Both the position numbers and the translations under genes were made by a program. A model generated the notes under the pieces. The model was given only the letters and a program-made list of their open reading frames with translations. It made no database searches and was not told where the DNA came from. This document shows, piece by piece, positions 828-28,033 of a stretch of DNA of 34,480 bases (its first letter is position 1; each line of letters begins with the position of its first letter). Source of the stretch: Hyphochytrium catenoides (lineage: Eukaryota; Protista; Hyphochytriomycota); assembly GCA_900088475.1 (NCBI GenBank), contig FLMG01002422.1, positions 1 to 34,480 of the forward strand, read 5' to 3'.

Positions 828-2669
828 CTACGGTCTCCTCCACAGTTCGTCTTCTTCATCATCCTTTCCTCTCAACGAAAACCTCCCAATGCCTGACCCC
901 GCAGTCCTTCTACCAGGGAAGGAAGACCCATGATCACCACTAGAGAATGCTCCAGAGAAATGTGGGCTGGAAGAGTGGTCAGTGCCATTAGGGGAGACAA
1001 GGTAGTTGTTCCCATCAAGCGTCTCTTCATCATCATGGTCTTCTTCTCCTTCTTCTCCGCCAGCAGCCACGAAGCTCGAGGTTACCACAACTGTTAGGAG
1101 CCTTGAACCGCAACTCCTACAGAACCGGTCATCCTGGCTCTCGGCCACCTTTCGACATCTCATACAGAGGGCAGCTGACGGAGGCGACGCCTCATCGTCA
1201 AGACCAACAGTGATCCCTTTCTCGAGAGTCTCTTCCTCCTTCTTCGCAGTGCCAAGTTGTCCCAGGTCTCTCCTGATATTTGCTGAAGTCTCTTGCTCCT
1301 TGGGTTCCGCTTGTAGAAGAGAGACAGACGGCCGAAGAAGTAGTGGAGGAACAACCCTCTCCGCATCACTCTTTTCCATGCTGGTCCCGCTCTCCATGCT
1401 TGATAACGTGGGACCATCGGCTTTAGGGCAAGACGTAGGAGAGGAGGAAGAAACTGGGGCGGACAAGCCCCTTAAAAAGCCTTGAGAGGAGTTAGGCCGA
1501 AGGGTACTTGAGGTAAGATTGTCCTTCCAATCACCCTTGGGCTCATCCATCTCCGGAGACTGCACTTCCAATGCCATCCTCTTCCCACGATAGACTCTGA
1601 CAGCTAGGAACAGGAGAAGAGCAATCCCTATTAGGGCCCCAATGCTTGCAATAACAGCTACCGTCGTTGATGAGAGGCCTCCGGAGGACACCGAGTTGTT
1701 GCCTCCAGTATCAGGTCCCGGACCCATCGAAGGCTGAGGATCTTTCTGGTTGTTGTCGTCGTCTATCGTAGAGCTGCCGCTGCAGTCCGAAGGTATCCCA
1801 AAAAAGAAAGCTTCTGACAGAGCGGTACGGGTGCTCTGAGAACCATCCCGTGCGAGAGAGTACTTGACGCCCACGTAATATAGGCCGGGAGAGAGACCTT
1901 CTGGCATTGTGAGAGACCCATCAGTTAGGTTTGCGTCAAGGTCATAGCTTTTGACAAGCTCCTTCTTAGAAAGCCCCTTAAGTAGATCAGCCTTGATCGA
2001 TAGAACGTCTGTCCCACCGCCGTGCGAGTCATCGATCCAGGCCAGGCTGACAGCAATTGTCTTTGCATCTGAGCTGATAACACCTGCTTGCGGGGCTGTC
2101 ACCCGCAAGGGCTCCACGTTGTCAACAGTTCGAGGGCTAAATACCTCTGGCGAGCAAATGCCACGCTTCCCAGCCACTTCAAATGGTGGAGAGAGTAGAA
2201 CGAAGCCTCCCTTTTCTTCCTCTGTCTTGTAGACAAACCGATACCGTCCGCTGGGAAAAAGAGAGGGAGCATGCCAGGTCCATGATGGACTATCCGTATG
2301 GTACGCCACCACATCCATCACTGTCCCCGTCATGTTCAAGACCTCCACAGCTGCTAGCATGGGAGAGAACAGTGCCCTTTCTTCTTCGGAGGAGTAGGAA
2401 AAGCTGCCCAAGCAGATCTGGCCTGCCTGACAAGAAGTAGGTACGTCACTCCATACCACTTGCGGGGTAGCTGTCACGGCAGGAGAAGGCGCAGGGGCGG
2501 AAGACGGGGCATTATTGATACTATTAATCGGAGTATTGTCTCCTCCATCATCCGTCGAGGACTGGAGCGCACGACCTGTGCCATGGTGGTGGTAAAGCGC
2601 GAGATGTGACGATGTGCAGAGTGGCAATAGCGCCAATGCAAGAAGAAGACTGATGATGGGAGGGACCAT
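828..2669 (-). CDS. Intronless type-I single-pass membrane protein (signal peptide, two Kre9/Ser-Thr-GPI-like beta-sandwich repeats, S/G/P linker, TM helix, cytoplasmic zinc ribbon); paralogue A
   Basis: 643-aa ORF 828..2759. Likely start is the ATG at 2669 (MVPPIISLLLALALLPLCTSS signal peptide); an upstream ATG exists at 2756. TM helix VAVIASIGALIGIALLLFLAV followed by RVYRGKR. CMRC-x11-CRSC at 1098..1166. Collinear similarity with the ORF at 4993..6708. Confidence 0.85.
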   Translation of the reverse strand: MVPPIISLLLALALLPLCTSSHLALYHHHGTGRALQSSTDDGGDNTPINSINNAPSSAPAPSPAVTATPQVVWSDVPTSCQAGQICLGSFSYSSEEERALFSPMLAAVEVLNMTGTVMDVVAYHTDSPSWTWHAPSLFPSGRYRFVYKTEEEKGGFVLLSPPFEVAGKRGICSPEVFSPRTVDNVEPLRVTAPQAGVISSDAKTIAVSLAWIDDSHGGGTDVLSIKADLLKGLSKKELVKSYDLDANLTDGSLTMPEGLSPGLYYVGVKYSLARDGSQSTRTALSEAFFFGIPSDCSGSSTIDDDNNQKDPQPSMGPGPDTGGNNSVSSGGLSSTTVAVIASIGALIGIALLLFLAVRVYRGKRMALEVQSPEMDEPKGDWKDNLTSSTLRPNSSQGFLRGLSAPVSSSSPTSCPKADGPTLSSMESGTSMEKSDAERVVPPLLLRPSVSLLQAEPKEQETSANIRRDLGQLGTAKKEEETLEKGITVGLDDEASPPSAALCMRCRKVAESQDDRFCRSCGSRLLTVVVTSSFVAAGGEEGEEDHDDEETLDGNNYLVSPNGTDHSSSPHFSGAFSSGDHGSSFPGRRTAGSGIGRFSLRGKDDEEDELWRRP

Positions 2670-3302
2670 GCATCTTCTCCGGCAACCTTTTCTTCTCGTG
2701 ACAGAAAAGGCAGCAGAGTAGCTTCCAGAGGCAGCTCTTCTAGAGATATTTCTCATCAATGAAATAGCAGCGGCACCGATAGACCGAGAAGCACGTCAAA
2801 GATGGGACAAGGCAGAAGATGCAGAACTCTTCTACAGATTGTCAACGGCAATCAACCGGACAGACGGCAGCAACTCCAAGATTCGGGGTTAAAAAGCAGG
2901 GAGAAACAGTGGAGCAGACACCTTCAGATGTCGCTGCGATAAAAATCACCGCTAAATGTCTGACAACAGGCTAACAGACGAAGCAAATCAAAAGCCTAGG
3001 GCATCCCTAAGAGATAGATCGATAGAAGACAAGCATAATAAAGATCTGAAGCTCAGACTTCTTGGACTCTTTTATAAAAAAAAGAGGAGAAAGAGAGAGA
3101 ATCTGAAGAAGCTCCAAGGTTGAGGCGGCGAGGTGCCTGATGAAGATGCGCCATTGTTTATCTGTTCTTGGCTGTTGCTCTACTAGGAGACAGAGACAGA
3201 GCAGGAGGGCAGGTTCTCATTGTGTTTGCGATCTCATTGTGTGAGAGAGAGCCTTGTGAGGAGCCTGGACACAGCTGAGCAGCTGCTTGATTAACCTTTT
3301 GG

Positions 3303-3307
<5 letters not shown>

Positions 3308-3346
<39 letters not shown>

Positions 3347-3359
3347 AAGAGAGAGAGAG

Positions 3360-3390
<31 letters not shown>

Positions 3391-3710
3391 CAGAAAGAGA
3401 CAGAGACAGAGAGAGAGAGAGAGCGAGAGAGAGAGAGTGAGAGAGAAAGAAAGAGAGAAGACGAGAAGACAAGAGAGAAAAAGAGGGAAAAAGAAAGAGG
3501 GAGAAAAAAGAGAGAGAAGGGGGGAAGAGACAGAAAGAGAGAGAGATAACGAGAGAAACACAAGACACAAAGAGGGTAAGACAGAGATAAGGACAAAACG
3601 GAGAAAGACAGAGAGAAGAATAGACAGGGGTTAGCCCCAAAAGAGAGAAAGACATAAAGGGAGAGAAGAGGATAGGAGAGAAGTCCTGTACAAGGGAAGA
3701 CAGAGGAATA
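3308..3710. repeat. (GA)n microsatellite and purine-rich low-complexity tract
   Basis: Directly visible GA/GACA/GAAA runs; explains the spurious ER/SL-repeat ORFs at 3158..3772. Confidence 0.95.
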
Positions 3711-4364
3711 ACCTCCTGGCTTTCTTTCTCTCTCTTCATCTTGAAACCTACGTATCTAGTACAACGAGACAAAGCACAATAGACAAACCATACGTCAACT
3801 CTGTCTGCGGCCTATTTCACTCTGTCTCGCAGGACGGCGCCCCGTCAGCCATGATGGTAGGAAAATTTTTCCTGCTTCTTTCATCCCGATCTCTCGCTAC
3901 TTGAAATGTGCGCTCTCTTGGAATCTAAGCTGGTTATATGGAGGGAATCTGTGAGGTTTGAGCGTATCCCCACCACGACCCACCCAAAGGTTCGCCCGTC
4001 TCCCTTATAATCCTCAGTCACTGTCGTTTATTATTTTTACCATAGTAAATAACCCAGATGACGTCGAAATGGTTTTCAGTAACCTCAGTTTCCCTTCGGT
4101 CTGACAGATTGGATCTGAGGGGGGTTTAGCCCTTTACTTGTGACCGGCTCATCAAGGAATCTTCGCTCTTGGCTGTATAAATAGCTCGGTCCTTGTAGAG
4201 AGACCCTCCATAGATGACCTTCATTTCCCAATAATCTTCACATATCTTCATCTTCATCTCCTGCAGATCTTCACCATCAAAGCTTCAGCCCAGGCTTCAG
4301 CACCATCAGCTTATCGCCAAAATCTTATTTTCTCTCCTCATGATGGATTAGAACTCTGATTAAT

Positions 4365-23084: not shown

Positions 23085-26000
23085 ATGATAAGAAGGGCTT
23101 CATCAAAACTCCTGCGCAGCCTTAGCGGCCAGAGAAGAGAAGATGACTTTGACGATGACGTCCCGCTCTCAAGTGCGAGGTCAGATATTCAGGACAGTTA
23201 CTATTCTTCCAGAGATTCGGATGAGGGTGTGCAGGCTCCAGATGGGGTGCATGAGCATCCCACGGGGTCGGAAACAGCATCCCGTCAGCTTGTAGGTGGT
23301 GAGCGAAGCAGCGAAGAAGTCTCTTCACGTCTCTCGGGGAAACAAATCATCGAGGCTATTAGCAAGGCAATGACCGTCGATAATAATAAGGAGGAGGGAA
23401 GCGATCAGAGCGATCAGAGCAGCCGCGATGAGGATCTGGTGATGCCGATTCACTTGAAGATAAAGAGGAAACAGAGAAAGTTCCTACATTCTCACTCGCT
23501 CTCTCCTCGTTCTTCACCTTCAGGTCAGACATGCGTAAGAAACTGCTTAGCTGACCAGTGTAGACTCTGGCCGCTGGCCTCTCACTTTTACTGAGTGTGC
23601 TGACCTTACTGCACAGATTAGTCTTCCTACGTTTTCTTCATTTTTCCACCGTCATGGCTTCCCTTAAGAGATTAAATCTCTTCTGACGTCCCGGGTGTCA
23701 CGCTTTCTTGTCTGCCAGCCACTCGCGCAACCCTCCTTCGGTCTTTCAGTCAACCGGATGCCACCGAGCGGTCGATGTATTTTGGGGCAGGAGCTGATTA
23801 CGAAGACACGGAAGAGGATGATGACGAATCTCAGGGACGTGAACAGTTTTACGGTGATGGAGAGGTTGTCAGAGGCTCGGCTGCATCTCCCACCATGACA
23901 CCACGAGGGACGGCAGAGCTGGTGGAGAATGTTCTCAAGCACCCTGTAAGGCTTTCTTCTCAATGGCTTGAAGCTTTTAGGCTGTGATCCCTTCTGCCTC
24001 ATACTTTTCTATGTTCTGCCTCAAACTTTTCTAGGCTCCCTTCGTGTGCTCAGTCTCGTCCTTGCATATGATCTTTGCAGGAGAATGAGAAGAAGTTGAT
24101 GCGAACCTTAACCAACCGTTTTAGCGACAAAGAACTGGAGAGGGCATATCAGAGGGAGAGCACAAGAATTGTTTTTTTCCAGTCAAGAGTATTTGTCGGG
24201 ATTGTCATCACTTCACACTGTCTAATCGCTATAGCGTTTGCCATAACGGATGAGCTCAGCGATGGTAATGAACACGCTCACAAAGTTCTGCTTTCAGCTA
24301 TATGTCCACTTGTTGTTGAGACATTGCACTGGGCTGCGTACATTACCGTCTTCGCTCGCACCTGCTTTCGTTGGGATCTGGACATTTTTTAACCTGCTTT
24401 TTATTTCTTTTGGCCATAGTAGCTAATGAACCCTTACATGTCCGCAACAGCAGTTTAACTTTGATCTTCTTGTTGATGTCGATGCTAAATTTTCGGTCCA
24501 TAGTCGCTATCAGGTTTTTGAACACTCGCCTTGTGTGTCGCTTCTCTCCTTTTTGAACACAGAATCTGGACTCCAGATCCTCTCACGCGGCCTCGATGAC
24601 GCATGGCAATGGCTACAATTTGTTTATTTATTTGTCGGCATCCCGTACGCTGCTTGGCCCGGAGAGGCTAGTCCTTTCAGAACTCATTGGAAATGGTGGT
24701 TGGCAGGTAGGCTCTGCTGTTGGTAGCTCTTGCTGCATAGTTGGACCTATTCGCACTGAGAGCTCTTCACTATATTGTGGCCCTTTGACCCGTTTGTTTT
24801 GCGGTTACTCCAAAGCCTTTGCATTTGTCGTTTGGGCAAATGCCCTATGTCATCCTTGCAATGGGACGATCTTTCTTTGTCCTCTTCATCTCTCTCTCTC
24901 TCTCTTTTTCTCTCTCTGTCTCTCTCTATCCCCTCTCGCTCTGGGTCTGTCTCTCTCTCTCTCTCTGGCTCTTTACTGTGAATGGTAGTTGTTTAAGGCT
25001 AACTATTTTCCTGCTTTACGGGCACTCCTGTAGGTCTTATTTTTCTCTTTAGCGTCGGCCTTCAAATCTGGATTGCACAGCAGTCTCCACAGTCAGCATT
25101 GGCCTTCGAGGAACAGGTTGGAATGATGGAAATAAAGAACTGCTTCGTGAACGTCTCGACGCTGGACTTTATAAAGGGCGAGGAGAATTACCTTGGCGAG
25201 GGGAGAACACTTGCAGAGTTTCTAAAGACACGAGATGAACGGCTGTATGACGCCTACGTTTCAGTTGGCGCAGTTCTGTTGACTGTTATCGGGTAAGCTA
25301 AGCCATTTTCCGGCTAGTTCCGGTCGGGACTGTGTGAGAAGAGGGCCAGCCTGATGATGAAGGATCCTACGCTTTCTTATTTTAGCGGCTTCCTTCTGCG
25401 CCAAAGACTTCTCATAATGCTGTTATCTGGCGTCGTTGCGTTCGACCCTATTGACTCAGCTTACCGGTGGCCTCATCTCCCTTCCCGTCTCAATTGGAAT
25501 CTGTTTGTGGCGATAGGGTAACCCTGGCAGTGGCTATGCGCTTGGATTTCGTCCAAGTCCTATTTGTAGGAGTGTGCAGTTCTTTGGTGCTAGGCGTCGT
25601 TCTTGTCCTTACGCAGAGTACCAAGGAGCCAGTAATCTTGGTTCCGGATTCGGTCCCGTCCATCCTACTTTGCCTTGCCTCCTACCTTTCAGAGAGGAGC
25701 TCTAGAAGACTATTTCTCAGTAAAATTGCGCTGCAGTGTGAAAATGAAGAGGTGGGCATTTTCCTAACTCTACGACCGTTCCCGTCCGTCTTAGTCCTAG
25801 TGGTGGCTGTGAGCATGGCTTGGCTCTACTAAAGCTGTGAGGAGTAGATGTGGCCTTCATCTACTCTTGATCTTTGAGCATGCCTCTTAATGACTAAACT
25901 TCTCGCATTCCAATTTGGCTTATTACTCGCGGCTGTAGCTGCAAGAGAACCTGAACAAGGCGGAAGCAGCTTTGGCGAATGATGAAGCTCTACCGTCGGA

Positions 26001-28033
26001 AGAAGCGGCAGTAAAGAATGTTTTGATGAGGTTGGAAGGCCGAAGTGTGACCGTCCTTCAACATTCAAATAACCCTTCTTACATTCTCTACGACTAACGT
26101 TGTCCCTAAACGAGTTCCTACCTAGTCCCTTTACGTATATCCGATCTTTATACTCAATGCTTGTCTCTTTCTGCCATACCTCCATACGTTATGTGCTGTT
26201 CTCACATATCTGGGTCTCGTTTATCCGTTAGCAAAGAAGCGAGGTATCTGTCGTCCATCCGGATTAACTTTAGCGAGCTCAAGTTGCTCACAGTTATTGG
26301 CCGAGGGGGAATGGGCGAGGTTATTAAGGCTGAATACTTAGGGACCGTGGTGTGCGTCAAGAGACTACGACGAGACCTCATCACCCCGCAAAGTTTGCTA
26401 GAGTTCAGAGGCGAGATAGAACTCATGTCCTCCCTCAGGCACCCCAATATTGTGCAGGTAAGACACAGGGGCTACTTATACGAGTGCTTAAGTGTCAACT
26501 CGCTGTTTTATATATTGAGCTTACTAGAAATTGCGTTGCTGCGGCCACAGCGTAGCCTAACTCAGTTCTGACAAATGTCCCGCTGTTCGCTCCACATGTG
26601 CACCCTACCCTCATTAGTTTATTGGTGCGAGTTGGGATAATCCTAGTAACGTTTGTATGGTTATGGAGTTCATGGAAACCGGTGACGTACACTCTGTACT
26701 CCACACGCCGAACCTAAAGCTTTCATGGGCAGACCCACTGCTCAAAATAGGTAAGAAGCATGTCATCTGTCTTTAACTCATCGACTTATATTCTCCTCTG
26801 GCCATTTACTTGTTCTATCTGGAGCTACGATCCTTTCTTTACCTATAATGTAGTGGTATAGGCCTTTCTTGCTTGTCCCTCCCAGTGACTGAGCCATCGC
26901 CTTGCATTCTTTAGCTGTGGATGCAGCCCAGGGGATGCTATACCTGCACACAAATGATCCTCCAATTATACACCGAGACCTAAAGAGTGTCAACCTGCTC
27001 TGCTCCGGGACCTACGGCTGCAAGGTGACAGACTTTGGGCTTAGCCGCAAGCTTCAATCAGACCTCAAGACCGTAGTAGGAACGCCCTTCTGGCTGGCAC
27101 CGGAGGTAAGCACAGCGGCATCTTGAACACTGTCAATTCGACGGTATTGCCTTGATTAAACCCGATCGTGTTCGCCGTCGCGCCACTATCTCCGACCCGC
27201 CTTGGTCTTAGCAACTCGCTGCAACTAGTTCTGGTCATGCAAGTGCTGTGCTTGTTATCCCTAAATTTCAGTGCTCATTTCTTCCTGTCATCTTTGCAAG
27301 GTTATCCGCAATGAGAGCTACACTATCAAGGCAGATGTCTATTCCTTTGGCATTGTGCTGTATGAGCTGGAGGTGAGTGGGTTGATACCCCCTAGCGCCT
27401 CAAATCTCCTCAGCTGTCGATCTTCGTACTTCTTATGCATCGGAGACTAGACGCGATTGCTTGCTTACGGTCATCTTGATCCTACCTAGACCCGCAAGAA
27501 CCCGTATTATGAACATAAGAAGGAGGGCAAGAAAGATGGGGTACACTTACTGGTTGCTATCGCACACCGTGGCCTTCGCCCTTCGCTTCCCGAGACTACT
27601 CTGCCGAGGTTAAGGAAGCTGATTGAAGATTGCTGGCAGGTGAGCTGCCGATACGACTCTGCTATTCACCTATCTCCTTTCTTGTGTTCACGTTAACACT
27701 CTGTTACCTTACCGGCTTAGTCTAACTTCTCATCTCTTCCAGAATGATCCACAAGGCCGGCCCACGATGTCGGAAGTTCTCATGCGACTTCAGGGCGAGA
27801 TCCGTCTGGAGATCAGTAATGAGACAGACAGATTCGTGAGTGAACGAAGGGCTGTACTACAGAGACGGTTGCGCGGTCTGGAAAGCGACTACCTTTCCCG
27901 CGCGTCTTCCTTTATGTCGGCATTGGACGGTCTCAGTTACAACGACGACAGAGGGACGCTACAGGGACATGCTAACAATACTTTCGAAGATTCGCAAAGC
28001 AGCCTTGTAAAAAGCGTCCGCTTCAGAGTTTGA
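23085..28033 (+). CDS. Multi-pass membrane TKL (Raf/MAP3K-like) protein kinase with adenylyl-cyclase-like 6TM module
   Basis: Exons approx. 23085-23523, 23719-23945, 24081-24264, 24563-24706, 25034-25292, 25386-(about 25420 or 25439), 25517-25751, 25939-26030, 26232-26457, 26618-26750, 26915-27105, 27301-27372, 27490-27639, 27743-28033. Complete catalytic motifs: [66 protein letters not shown]. Confidence 0.9.
24888..24966. repeat. Intronic (CT)n tract
   Basis: Directly visible inside kinase intron 24707..25033. Confidence 0.9.

Follow-up and report, generated by a model that had tools for sequence, protein, structure and literature searches.

What is a membrane block with the flanking motifs of an adenylyl cyclase doing in front of a protein kinase? 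The question is raised by the forward-strand segment 24081-28033 of the window analysed here, a 34,480-nucleotide stretch of contig FLMG01002422.1 from Hyphochytrium catenoides. The GT-AG exons of this segment, in which the reading frame is kept throughout, encode both flanking motifs and six membrane helices, then a coiled coil followed by an intact Ser/Thr kinase of the TKL type. The motifs that flank cyclase membrane anchors, F-x-[DS]-x-x-L-E-x-x-Y and [ED]-x-x-x-R-x-x-F-L, are both present in the window, and a receptor role has been proposed or shown for the cyclase anchors themselves (PMC4821796, PMC11606603, PMC12505454). As elaborated below, the window protein probably belongs to a family of multi-pass, receptor-like TKL Ser/Thr kinases centred on oomycetes, in which the membrane block would act as the input module.

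Gene structure and membrane topology

The gene spans about 23085-28033 on the + strand, with about 13 exons and a product of about 870 aa. It probably starts upstream of the membrane block, where there is an ATG (23085) together with two exons of low complexity. These probable N-terminal exons (23085..23945, +), comprising an ATG open reading frame from 23085 and then an exon up to the donor at 23946, would encode a disordered, low-complexity, acidic, Ser-rich, cytosolic region, with internal borders that are uncertain. The donor at 23946 and the acceptor at 24080 are both of phase 0, and from 23946 through to the stop at 28033 every splice phase is compatible with canonical GT-AG sites. The N-terminal extensions of the relatives vary from 27 to 320 aa.

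TM exon 1 (24081..24264, +) contains the pre-TM1 motif quoted in the first-pass annotation, at 24108-24158, followed by TM1 at 24189-24245. The exon is matched by an intronless paralogue described below (tblastn E = 6e-9) and is included in the family alignment A1, which has 21 rows. Its donor at 24265 (gcgatg/gtaatg) is of phase 1 and compatible with the acceptor at 24562. The intron 24265..24562 (+) has no counterpart in the relatives, and the join of the short exon is gapless in A1. The first part of this intron, 24265-24389, is hydrophobic with an open frame and was probably taken for coding in the first-pass annotation. TM exon 2 (24563..24706, +) encodes extracellular loop 1-2, TM2 (24610-24657) and the cytosolic W-K-x-W turn into TM3. 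It matches the family block QW.YL..A.PF...P...W+.W with fitting phases, at 26-45% identity to relatives (blastp). TM exon 3 (25034..25292, +), also matched by the paralogue (tblastn E = 1e-4), covers TM3 (25036-25077), extracellular loop 3-4 (25078-25245) and the first part of TM4. The loop is long and contains the conserved family Cys as well as the NVS sequon; the latter, already quoted as part of an extended loop, lies in the stretch 25135-25167.

The donor at 25293 reads tatcgg/gtaagc. The acceptor at 25516 (gcgatag/g) is phase-compatible with 25292, and across the intron 25293..25516 (+) the join of 25292 to 25517 is in frame and gapless in the family alignment. It should be mentioned that a candidate exon at 25387-25516 was rejected; it is an open hydrophobic stretch without a family counterpart and would give seven or eight helices. 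TM exon 4 (25517..25751, +) encodes the end of TM4, the cytosolic M-R-L-D-F turn, TM5 (25551-25613), TM6 (25632-25688), the post-TM6 motif and the start of the coiled coil. The previously quoted closing stretch is found here at 25680-25751 and resumes as LQENL at 25939, in the coiled-coil linker exon (25939..26030, +), which is 52% identical to paralogue residues 416-444. The donor at 26031 (gatgag/gttgga) is weak.

The corrections to the exon model were drawn from A1 together with the phase check. Because 24265-24562 and 25293-25516 are introns, the corrected model has exactly six TM helices. The earlier count of about six hydrophobic segments stands, but the exons drawn for it, a first one to ~24370 and another at 25387-25516, have been corrected.

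Relatives and the kinase domain

The intronless paralogue in the same genome (L005:3341-5791:-) holds the membrane block and the kinase in one 816-aa ORF. The window exons are gapless and collinear with it, at 25-32% identity between the paralogue and the window TM exons. The same membrane block occurs in 15 independent database clusters, again gapless and collinear with the window exons (phmmer, A1), which is beyond what chance would give. Nearly all complete relatives, which come from independent assemblies, have Pkinase downstream of the block in the same protein; the named relatives are oomycete proteins annotated only as "protein kinase" (Albugo candida, Peronospora destructor and Lagenidium giganteum). 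The window protein matches the family, in order, over the pre-TM1 motif, the six helices, the post-TM6 motif, the coiled coil and the kinase. In the ESM Atlas, the family's own cluster, "Protein kinase domain-containing protein", has 398 members from Oomycota and aligns with a TM of 0.79. The cyclase domain PF00211 was found in none of the 15 relatives, and no intermediate joining the two families was seen.

Conserved positions of the block include a His in TM1, Q-W ahead of TM2 and P-F within it, Q-x-W closing TM3, a loop 3-4 Cys and R-L-[DE]-F following TM4. The relatives that show these polar and aromatic positions are 20-31% identical to the paralogue's block. Loop 3-4 is the most length-variable region of A1, with ~45 to ~150 residues, and is rich in sequons, with one conserved Cys column.

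The kinase is encoded by six exons including the stop (26232-26457, 26618-26750, 26915-27105, 27301-27372, 27490-27639 and 27743-28033, +), based on Pfam matches, phases and motifs; a C-terminal tail of ~80 aa is encoded by the same exons. Both Pfam Pkinase and PK_Tyr_Ser-Thr match. The G-loop IGRGGMGEV, the VVCVK lysine, the Ser/Thr-type HRDLKxxN loop and APE are kept, in agreement with the coiled coil and intact kinase reported at first pass to follow the TM block. Identity of the kinase exons to the relative P0002 is 44-83% (blastp), and the solved kinases nearest to P0002 are CTR1 (E = 1e-51), MLK1/4, Roco4, DLK and TAK1. Judged by its sequence, the kinase belongs to the TKL group, as the initial label of a TKL Ser/Thr kinase had it.

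It could be argued that the gene model is an artefact, in which a separate membrane-protein gene adjoins a kinase gene. The weak donor at 26031 would favor such a split, but the single ORF of the intronless paralogue holds both parts, and so do nearly all complete relatives, whose assemblies are independent. The conserved coiled coil of the family is matched by the linker exon 25939-26030, all junctions are phase-compatible, and the kinase exon has neither a start codon of its own nor upstream ORF context. An artefact is thus very improbable, and the sequence comparison supports transcript continuity, with membrane block and kinase forming one protein, not two. The chance is slimmer still that this protein is an oomycete "GPCR-TKL bigram", a seven-helix GPCR-like receptor joined to a TKL kinase (PMC5784254, PMC6033456). 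Bigrams number ~17 per oomycete genome, their output domain is in the same kinase group, and kinome work counted TM-TKLs of one to nine helices. However, the corrected window model and the paralogue both have six helices, not seven. No 7TM Pfam family matched the exons, the paralogue or the A1 rows, and no DEP domain was found; GPCR chains gave a TM of ~0.2 in Foldseek, with none among the matches listed from the exhaustive structure search. The oomycete TM TKL kinases and GPCR-TKL bigrams (PMC3019232, PMC5784254) do resemble the present family in kinase group, taxon range and receptor-like topology, and the family is probably among the multi-TM TKLs counted in the P. infestans kinome. These two papers give helix counts or a seven-helix GPCR signature, and a six-helix subset is not linked in them to cyclase anchors.

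Likeness of the membrane block to cyclase anchors

When the family profile A1 was compared with 177,635 PDB sequences, adenylyl cyclase 8 (AC8) was the sole match under E = 0.1, at a modest E = 0.0037, with the next match at 0.64. The cyclase-type flanking motifs proposed from the first reading are recovered in this match, which is made of four collinear pieces on the two motifs of both cyclase halves. The pre-TM1 motif of the block is aligned to AC8 155-176 (pre-TM1) and 687-712 (pre-TM7), and TM5-6 with the post-TM6 motif to AC8 304-368 (SYLSDRAQRQAFLE) and 850-955 (TM11-12 and post-TM motif), the post-TM6 piece giving 11.4/19.5 bits. In the family, the pre-TM1 motif reads N-x-F-x-D-x-x-x-E-x-x-Y-Q and sits on a cytosolic helix running into TM1, and the post-TM6 motif at the membrane exit reads S-Y-x-S-[DE]-R-x-x-R-x-x-F-L. 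Toward the end of the helical domain, where cyclases carry the cyclase-transducer element, the alignment extends through the coiled coil as far as an Asn (...AEAALxN in the profile versus ...NENMLRN in AC8) and stops there. An ATPase-cyclase fusion from the same genome shows the same motifs in register; the pairwise hhalign probability between the block and the genome's own cyclase motifs is ~4%. Pfam AC_N (PF16214) did not match the window exons, the paralogue or the 21 A1 rows at E up to 1-10, and neither did MASE8 (PF20968) match the window exons, the paralogue or any A1 row at E up to 10. For MASE8, a language-model feature score of 0.84 was obtained. A genome-wide search for AC_N also returned no match, but the control genomes were without a match too. 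Because Pfam AC_N does not match, the relation of the block to AC_N is, at the sequence level, one of remote similarity and not of family membership.

Both fold and dimer were modelled on the paralogue's block, not on the window's own protein, the exons of which were not joined. The AlphaFold (AF2) model has a pLDDT of 86 and a pTM of 0.82. Hydropathy and this model both give the paralogue six TM helices. In the model, a single unbroken helix spans TM6 and the cytosolic stretch (block residues 247-305), with TM6 extending as one cytosolic helix of ~40 residues before the kinase. An exhaustive VIA structure search over 48,161 PDB chains placed cyclase anchors at ranks 1-3, namely ImcA (Z 13.6, 215 residues, 4.1 Å), AC5 (Z 11.8, 222 residues, 3.3 Å) and AC9 (Z 10.7, 221 residues), although Z values below ~13 in this tool may come from common helical-bundle arrangements. 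Designed helical bundles ranked below the cyclase anchors (Z 8-10.5, at most 183 residues aligned). In a second look at the Foldseek candidates, ranks 1-6 were ImcA, AC8 (Z 12.7, 259 aligned), AC5, AC9, AC5 and AC9; over both comparisons, AC5 scored Z 11.8-12.0 and AC9 Z 10.0-12.0. Foldseek itself found nothing significant in the PDB, the best E being 0.27 and the TMq values 0.38 for AC5 and 0.39 for ImcA. The likeness to adenylyl cyclase anchors, on which the first-pass annotation had staked its reading of the TM block, is therefore borne out by the profile and by the exhaustive structure search, but not by Foldseek. In the ESM Atlas, the named non-self neighbours are the Guanylate_cyc, GGDEF, AC9, MASE8 and AC_N clusters (TM 0.60-0.65), every one a class III or GGDEF cyclase, or MASE8. 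The structural alignment of model residues 1-321 to AC8 675-975 agrees with the sequence alignment at both ends. For the paralogue's membrane block as modelled, the fold of the class III adenylyl cyclase and ImcA six-helix anchors is supported.

We have compared the block with the known systems that it resembles. With the class III adenylyl cyclase anchors (AC5, AC8, AC9 and M. tuberculosis Rv1625c/Cya) it has in common six helices with the N-terminus inside, the F-x-[DS]-x-x-L-E-x-x-Y motif running into the first helix and, at the exit of the last helix, [ED]-x-x-x-R-x-x-F-L followed by a coiled coil. The fold likeness of the paralogue model to these anchors is Z 10.7-12.7 over 217-259 residues. 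In contrast, the output is a TKL protein kinase here and a class III cyclase domain (PF00211) in the adenylyl cyclases, and the long extracellular loop 3-4 is a further difference. There is one six-helix unit per chain, as in Cya, whereas the mammalian cyclases have 2 x 6. The best structural match, ImcA of Pseudomonas aeruginosa (PDB 8wcn), is a six-TM diguanylate cyclase; it forms a homodimer, and activity requires the six-TM domain (PMC10904736). Among its Atlas neighbours, the block has the MASE8 and GGDEF clusters at TM 0.60-0.62. However, modules of the ImcA/MASE8 type are bacterial with GGDEF output, and the flanking motifs found their match in AC8 alone and not in ImcA. CqsS of Vibrio, a six-helix receptor for a lipophilic ligand wired directly to a kinase, is alike by description and is functionally interchangeable with cyclase anchors in chimeras (PMC4821796, PMC12414865), but it is bacterial with a histidine kinase as output in place of the TKL Ser/Thr kinase. 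CqsS was not among the matches of the PDB searches.

Predicted dimer and proposed input mechanism

A dimer model, suggested at first pass as a check, was built as a homodimer of the paralogue's block and gave an ipSAE of 0.63, compared to 0.02 for the best control. The runs share at least 66% of contacts, with a partner pLDDT of at least 68. Among proteins of known structure, 21 of the 30 solved as pairs attained this mark, compared to none of the 23 solved as single chains; the pass may stem from cyclase dimer structures already known to the predictor. The predicted dimer is symmetric, with an interface formed by TM4, TM6 and the coiled coil, and its contacts along the TM6/coiled-coil helix have a spacing of 3-4 residues. 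The predicted TM4/TM6 interface matches that of Cya, where TM4-6 mediate dimerisation and TM6 continues into the helical domain (PMC9433096).

Our proposal is a ligand-sensing block that drives the kinase. As the input module, the 2 x 6 helix bundle would detect a cue that is membrane-borne or extracellular. This might be a lipid or small molecule lodged in a pocket of the bundle, or a factor to which the variable loop binds. In response, the two TM6/coiled-coil helices would shift in register or rotation, and this change would set the mutual position of the two kinase domains and thereby control trans-autophosphorylation and output. The logic would be that of the membrane cyclases, from anchor to helical domain to catalytic dimer, with the kinase replacing the cyclase.

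Two other readings of the block bear on this proposal, one concerning its function and the other its origin. The block might be a passive anchor and dimerisation scaffold acting through TM4, TM6 and the coiled coil, with no ligand sensed and with regulation by the cytosolic N-terminus, the C-terminal tail or partners. The dimer prediction is equally compatible with a pure scaffold, TM1-5 of Cya have been assigned a "guide rail" role in assembling the helical and catalytic domains (PMC9433096), and cyclase TM domains are still described as a functional blind spot (PMC12414865). The conserved polar and aromatic positions in and beside the helices would be superfluous in a greasy anchor, however, and the variable, sequon-rich loop 3-4 is as expected of a diversifying exposed surface. 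Lipid regulation through cyclase anchors has also been reported (PMC11606603, PMC12505454), and we regard a mere scaffold as unlikely, if still a serious competitor. Somewhat less likely again is convergence, by which a six-helix bundle followed by a coiled coil was reached independently and the motifs reflect general juxtamembrane needs. It would account for the missing Pfam AC_N and MASE8 matches, the non-significant Foldseek result, the hhalign probability of ~4% against the own-genome cyclase motifs, the Z of 8-10.5 attained by designed bundles, and the lack of cyclase output among the relatives in the 15 clusters. Against it, the sole profile match with E < 0.1 is a membrane adenylyl cyclase, matched four times at homologous positions in both halves; cyclase anchors align over 215-259 residues, compared to at most 183 for the designed bundles; the named non-self Atlas neighbours are all nucleotide cyclases or MASE8; and the sequence and structure alignments agree in register.

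Returning to a cyclase-type input module, an intact kinase in place of the cyclase offers a second natural read-out for what these poorly understood anchors sense. A further-reaching idea, which we put forward tentatively and as the less probable outcome, is that the cyclase-type six-helix module is a portable ligand-binding receptor domain with at least two eukaryotic outputs, nucleotide cyclase and Ser/Thr kinase. In that case, true homology would link the kinases of this family to the cyclase anchors, and they would answer to a lipid in the membrane or to an extracellular small molecule via the same TM6/coiled-coil transmission. If true, phosphorylation would provide an independent and easily assayed output to de-orphanise cyclase-type anchors, and the family would be natural evidence for adenylyl cyclase membrane domains as receptors.

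Exon structure and paralogues of the window gene

Between 23000 and 28100 on the plus strand there is no long open reading frame, only a succession of short open segments with GT and AG at their borders. The gene model was built from A1, the family alignment of the membrane block, together with a splice-phase check. It places the membrane block and linker on plus-strand exons at 24081-24264, 24563-24706, 25034-25292, 25517-25751 and 25939-26030, and the kinase on plus-strand exons at 26232-26457, 26618-26750, 26915-27105, 27301-27372, 27490-27639 and 27743-28033. The peptides quoted in the first-pass annotation were all located (17 letters at 24108-24158, 11 letters at 25135-25167, and 24 letters at 25680-25751, continued by LQENL from 25939). 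Its description of the kinase as intact also holds, with the downstream exons matching Pkinase and PK_Tyr_Ser-Thr and keeping all catalytic motifs, including GTPFWLAPE. Upstream, two more predicted exons (ATG at 23085) probably code for a disordered N-terminus.

Two open hydrophobic stretches were rejected as coding, each being without a counterpart in any relative: 24265-24389, as part of a longer TM exon 1 reaching about 24370, and 25387-25516. Their inclusion gives seven or eight helices; without them the joins are gapless and the helix count is exactly six. A CT/TC dinucleotide-rich tract at 24875-24975, inside the intron between TM exons 2 and 3, gives rise in every frame to long Leu/Ser-rich ORFs that are spurious.

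A search of the organism's own genome (61 Mb, 4,759 contigs) with the first TM exon turned up paralogues of the window gene. One of these, at L005:3341-5791 on the minus strand (contig C3996), is an intronless ORF of 816 aa, possibly a retrocopy. It carries its parts in the same order, namely an N-terminal region, the pre-TM1 motif, six hydrophobic helices, the post-TM6 motif, a coiled coil and a kinase, and is collinear with the window across all exons by tblastn. From sequence, we infer a continuous transcript with the modelled splice sites; the basis is this paralogue without introns, the compatible phases of the exons and the relatives. Window searches were carried out with single exons, and whole-protein analyses used the paralogue as a stand-in for the full-length product. 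In the kinase of the paralogue the glycine loop is degenerate (IYTGTITEV) and DFG is replaced by DFA, with the VAVK lysine and HRDLKSRN kept; its activity may be weakened, or it may act as a pseudokinase partner. A third, intron-bearing paralogue lies at about 1360-4300 on the plus strand of L006 (contig C3461, 1-5338), with LTLRFKDKEEEKKYQRD ahead of TM1, YVSERRTRYVY past the last helix, and a coiled coil and kinase at the end. Contig C3461 is short, and in L003, a stretch of the same contig, the ORFs contain a run of X (masked or N bases).

Relatives of the kinase family

A word-indexed search with the TM region of the paralogue returned no homologues, so an exhaustive phmmer search of 1.84 billion representatives was needed; 15 clusters match the TM block. 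In this search, the combination of membrane block and kinase originally read from the window recurs in nearly all complete relatives, the kinase following the block, and a cyclase domain is absent from every one of the 15 clusters. The exception without a kinase is P0007 from Lagenidium giganteum (DAZ99580.1, 2,614 aa), which has the six-helix block at 152-450, a START domain at 1394-1578, a weak PDZ match and no kinase domain by Pfam. In this protein the module may have another output, or the gene model may be a merged one.

The named relatives come from Albugo candida, Peronospora destructor and Lagenidium giganteum and are labelled "unnamed" or "protein kinase domain-containing" in the databases; an Oomycota cluster of this architecture in the ESM Atlas has 398 members. 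Identity of the window exons to the relatives is 24-45% in the TM block and 32-83% in the kinase. The kinase of P0002, another database relative, is closest to CTR1, MLK1/4, Roco4, DLK and TAK1, all of which are TKL kinases. By ESM Atlas language-model features, the clusters nearest to residues 125-445 of the L005 paralogue (0.90-0.91) contain unnamed eukaryotic proteins of 262-454 aa and are commonest in Haptophyta. The six-helix module may occur outside oomycetes, perhaps without a kinase.

Comparison of the membrane block with cyclase anchors

When the A1 profile was compared with 177,635 distinct PDB sequences, the sole match with E < 0.1 was adenylyl cyclase 8 (AC8; 8buz_A, E = 0.0037), the runner-up being at 0.64. 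The alignment to AC8 consists of four collinear pieces. The pre-TM1 motif aligns with AC8 155-176 (NSFKSRDLERLYQRY) and 687-712 (MFKDSSLEHKYSQ), while TM5-6 and the post-TM6 motif align with 304-368 (SYLSDRAQRQAFLE) and 850-955 (LEYTARLDFLW...). The two flanking-motif positions put forward in the first-pass annotation, before TM1 and after TM6, are thus matched exactly in both halves of AC8. No Pfam match to AC_N, MASE8 (MASE) or 7TM was found in the TM exons, the paralogue or any row of A1, where the only hits were sub-threshold noise (DUF4131, TgpA_N, 8xMP and Halogen_Hydrol). A PF16214 search of the organism's own genome gave no matches, and its controls likewise gave none, so that this negative carries no information. 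In the Pfam sense, the membrane block is outside the cyclase-anchor family.

The same genome encodes, on the plus strand of L018 (contig C1912, 44000-53999), a fusion of a P-type ATPase with a two-domain class III cyclase, of the alveolate/stramenopile type. Its cyclase membrane blocks have the same flanking motifs (LTLEF...YLETLYNRQF; RRDFLQQR...ILDNIYP; FTLRFRNRATEEWFQ; FFTRRKLWLLQQ...LLYQMLP). The hhalign match of A1 to these motifs, in register yet weak (pairwise E about 0.01, probability about 4%), is taken as supportive colour only. Another class III cyclase, at L017:2491-5244 on the minus strand (contig C4243), was set aside as irrelevant to the anchor comparison, being without a six-helix anchor. 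This intronless ORF of 917 aa has the layout of a bacterial-looking protein: a sensor region outside the cell, a single TM helix, segments resembling HAMP and PAS, and the class III cyclase domain.

The fold was evaluated on a template-free AlphaFold2 model of the paralogue block, not of the window's own protein (pLDDT 86, pTM 0.82). The AlphaFold2 weights are older than the first membrane cyclase structure, and recall of this model from training is therefore unlikely. In an exhaustive structural alignment of the model to all 48,161 PDB representatives, the top three were the six-TM diguanylate cyclase ImcA (8wcn_B; Z 13.6, 215 residues, rmsd 4.1 Å), AC5 (8sl3_A; Z 11.8, 222 residues, rmsd 3.3 Å) and AC9 (6r3q_A; Z 10.7, 221 residues, rmsd 4.7 Å), where a Z under about 13 may reflect an arrangement common in helical bundles. 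Under these came designed helical bundles with at most 183 residues aligned. In a second look, ranks 1-6 were entries of ImcA, AC8, AC5 and AC9; AC8 aligned with Z 12.7 over 259 residues (model 1-321 to AC8 675-975), in the same register as the profile alignment. Foldseek alone gave no PDB match for the model at E ≤ 0.001; the cyclases, a resemblance expected at first pass, were set apart by the exhaustive aligner only. In the ESM Atlas, all named structural neighbours outside the family itself are nucleotide cyclases or MASE8 (bacterial Guanylate_cyc, GGDEF and GGDEF-EAL proteins, AC9, an arthropod adenylyl cyclase with AC_N, and MASE8; TM 0.60-0.65 over 227-267 residues).

Three independent lines, profile, solved structures and predicted structures, agree on the cyclase-type reading. 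It is well supported that the membrane block of the kinase family shares its fold with the cyclase anchors. Remote common descent of the two is likely but not proven.

Predicted dimer and proposed role as an input module

A dimer, whose modelling was suggested as a check at first pass, is predicted for two copies of the paralogue block, which pass the controls with an ipSAE of 0.63 against 0.02 for the best control. Contact agreement between runs is at least 66% and partner pLDDT at least 68. Of 30 proteins solved as pairs, 21 attained this mark, compared with none of 23 solved as single chains, and a pass may stem from the predictor's memory of solved relatives. The predicted interface comprises TM4, TM6 and the helix running on from TM6, and contacts recur at intervals of three to four residues. 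It resembles that of Cya, in which TM4-6 form the dimer interface and TM6 continues into the helical-domain coiled coil positioning the catalytic dimer (PMC9433096). ImcA, too, is a homodimer, and its activity needs the six-TM domain (PMC10904736). Conserved polar and aromatic positions in the family include the His of TM1, Q-W and P-F around TM2, Q-x-W where TM3 ends, and R-L-[DE]-F beyond TM4. The extracellular loop 3-4 is variable and sequon-rich in A1, with one conserved Cys.

For the family of the window gene we infer an input mechanism in which the protein would be a homodimer with a 2 x 6 helix input module. The conserved polar and aromatic positions could line a pocket, and loop 3-4 could bind an extracellular partner of some kind. 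On a signal, the two TM6/coiled-coil helices would move, changing how the two kinase domains are placed to each other and so controlling trans-autophosphorylation. The same logic applies to membrane cyclases and to the six-TM histidine kinase CqsS, which in chimeras can take the place of cyclase anchors (PMC4821796, PMC12414865). Regulation by lipids via the cyclase anchors has been reported (PMC11606603, PMC12505454).

Other readings of the locus can be weighed against this proposal. Assignment to the GPCR-TKL bigram (PMC5784254, PMC6033456) fails on the number of helices, and the fold matches point elsewhere. Two adjacent genes, one for a membrane protein and one for a kinase, are contradicted by the intronless paralogue and by relatives that carry both parts together. 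Convergence on the cyclase-anchor arrangement is disfavoured, as the profile match is specific and the sequence and structure registers concur. The membrane block could also be a passive anchor and dimerisation scaffold; we regard this as unlikely, though a serious minority reading, and the conservation inside the helices speaks against a mere anchor. A signal-receiving cyclase-type module remains the preferred reading.

In mammalian membrane adenylyl cyclases, the two six-helix membrane domains account for roughly a third of the protein. Their function was still called a "blind spot" in a 2025 review (PMC12414865), and it is only recently that evidence has emerged for a role as lipid receptors (PMC11606603, PMC12505454). 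TKLs with one to nine helices were counted as oomycete-specific receptor-like kinases in the P. infestans kinome (PMC3019232), and a later survey of transmembrane kinases counts likewise (PMC10463195). In a literature search of limited scope, a six-helix TKL subset tied to cyclase anchors was not found in PMC3019232, PMC10463195 or PMC12414865, nor in the literature on hexahelical domains and Phytophthora. The relatives are already public, labelled as protein kinases only.

Because a natural family feeds a kinase through the same TM6/coiled-coil connection, the six-helix module is probably an input domain in its own right, and a cyclase-specific anchor is unlikely. Ligand searches and domain-swap experiments gain a second read-out in the kinase family. 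In oomycetes, where multi-pass TKL "receptor-like" kinases form a large and uncharacterised set, the family provides some of them with a structural identity.
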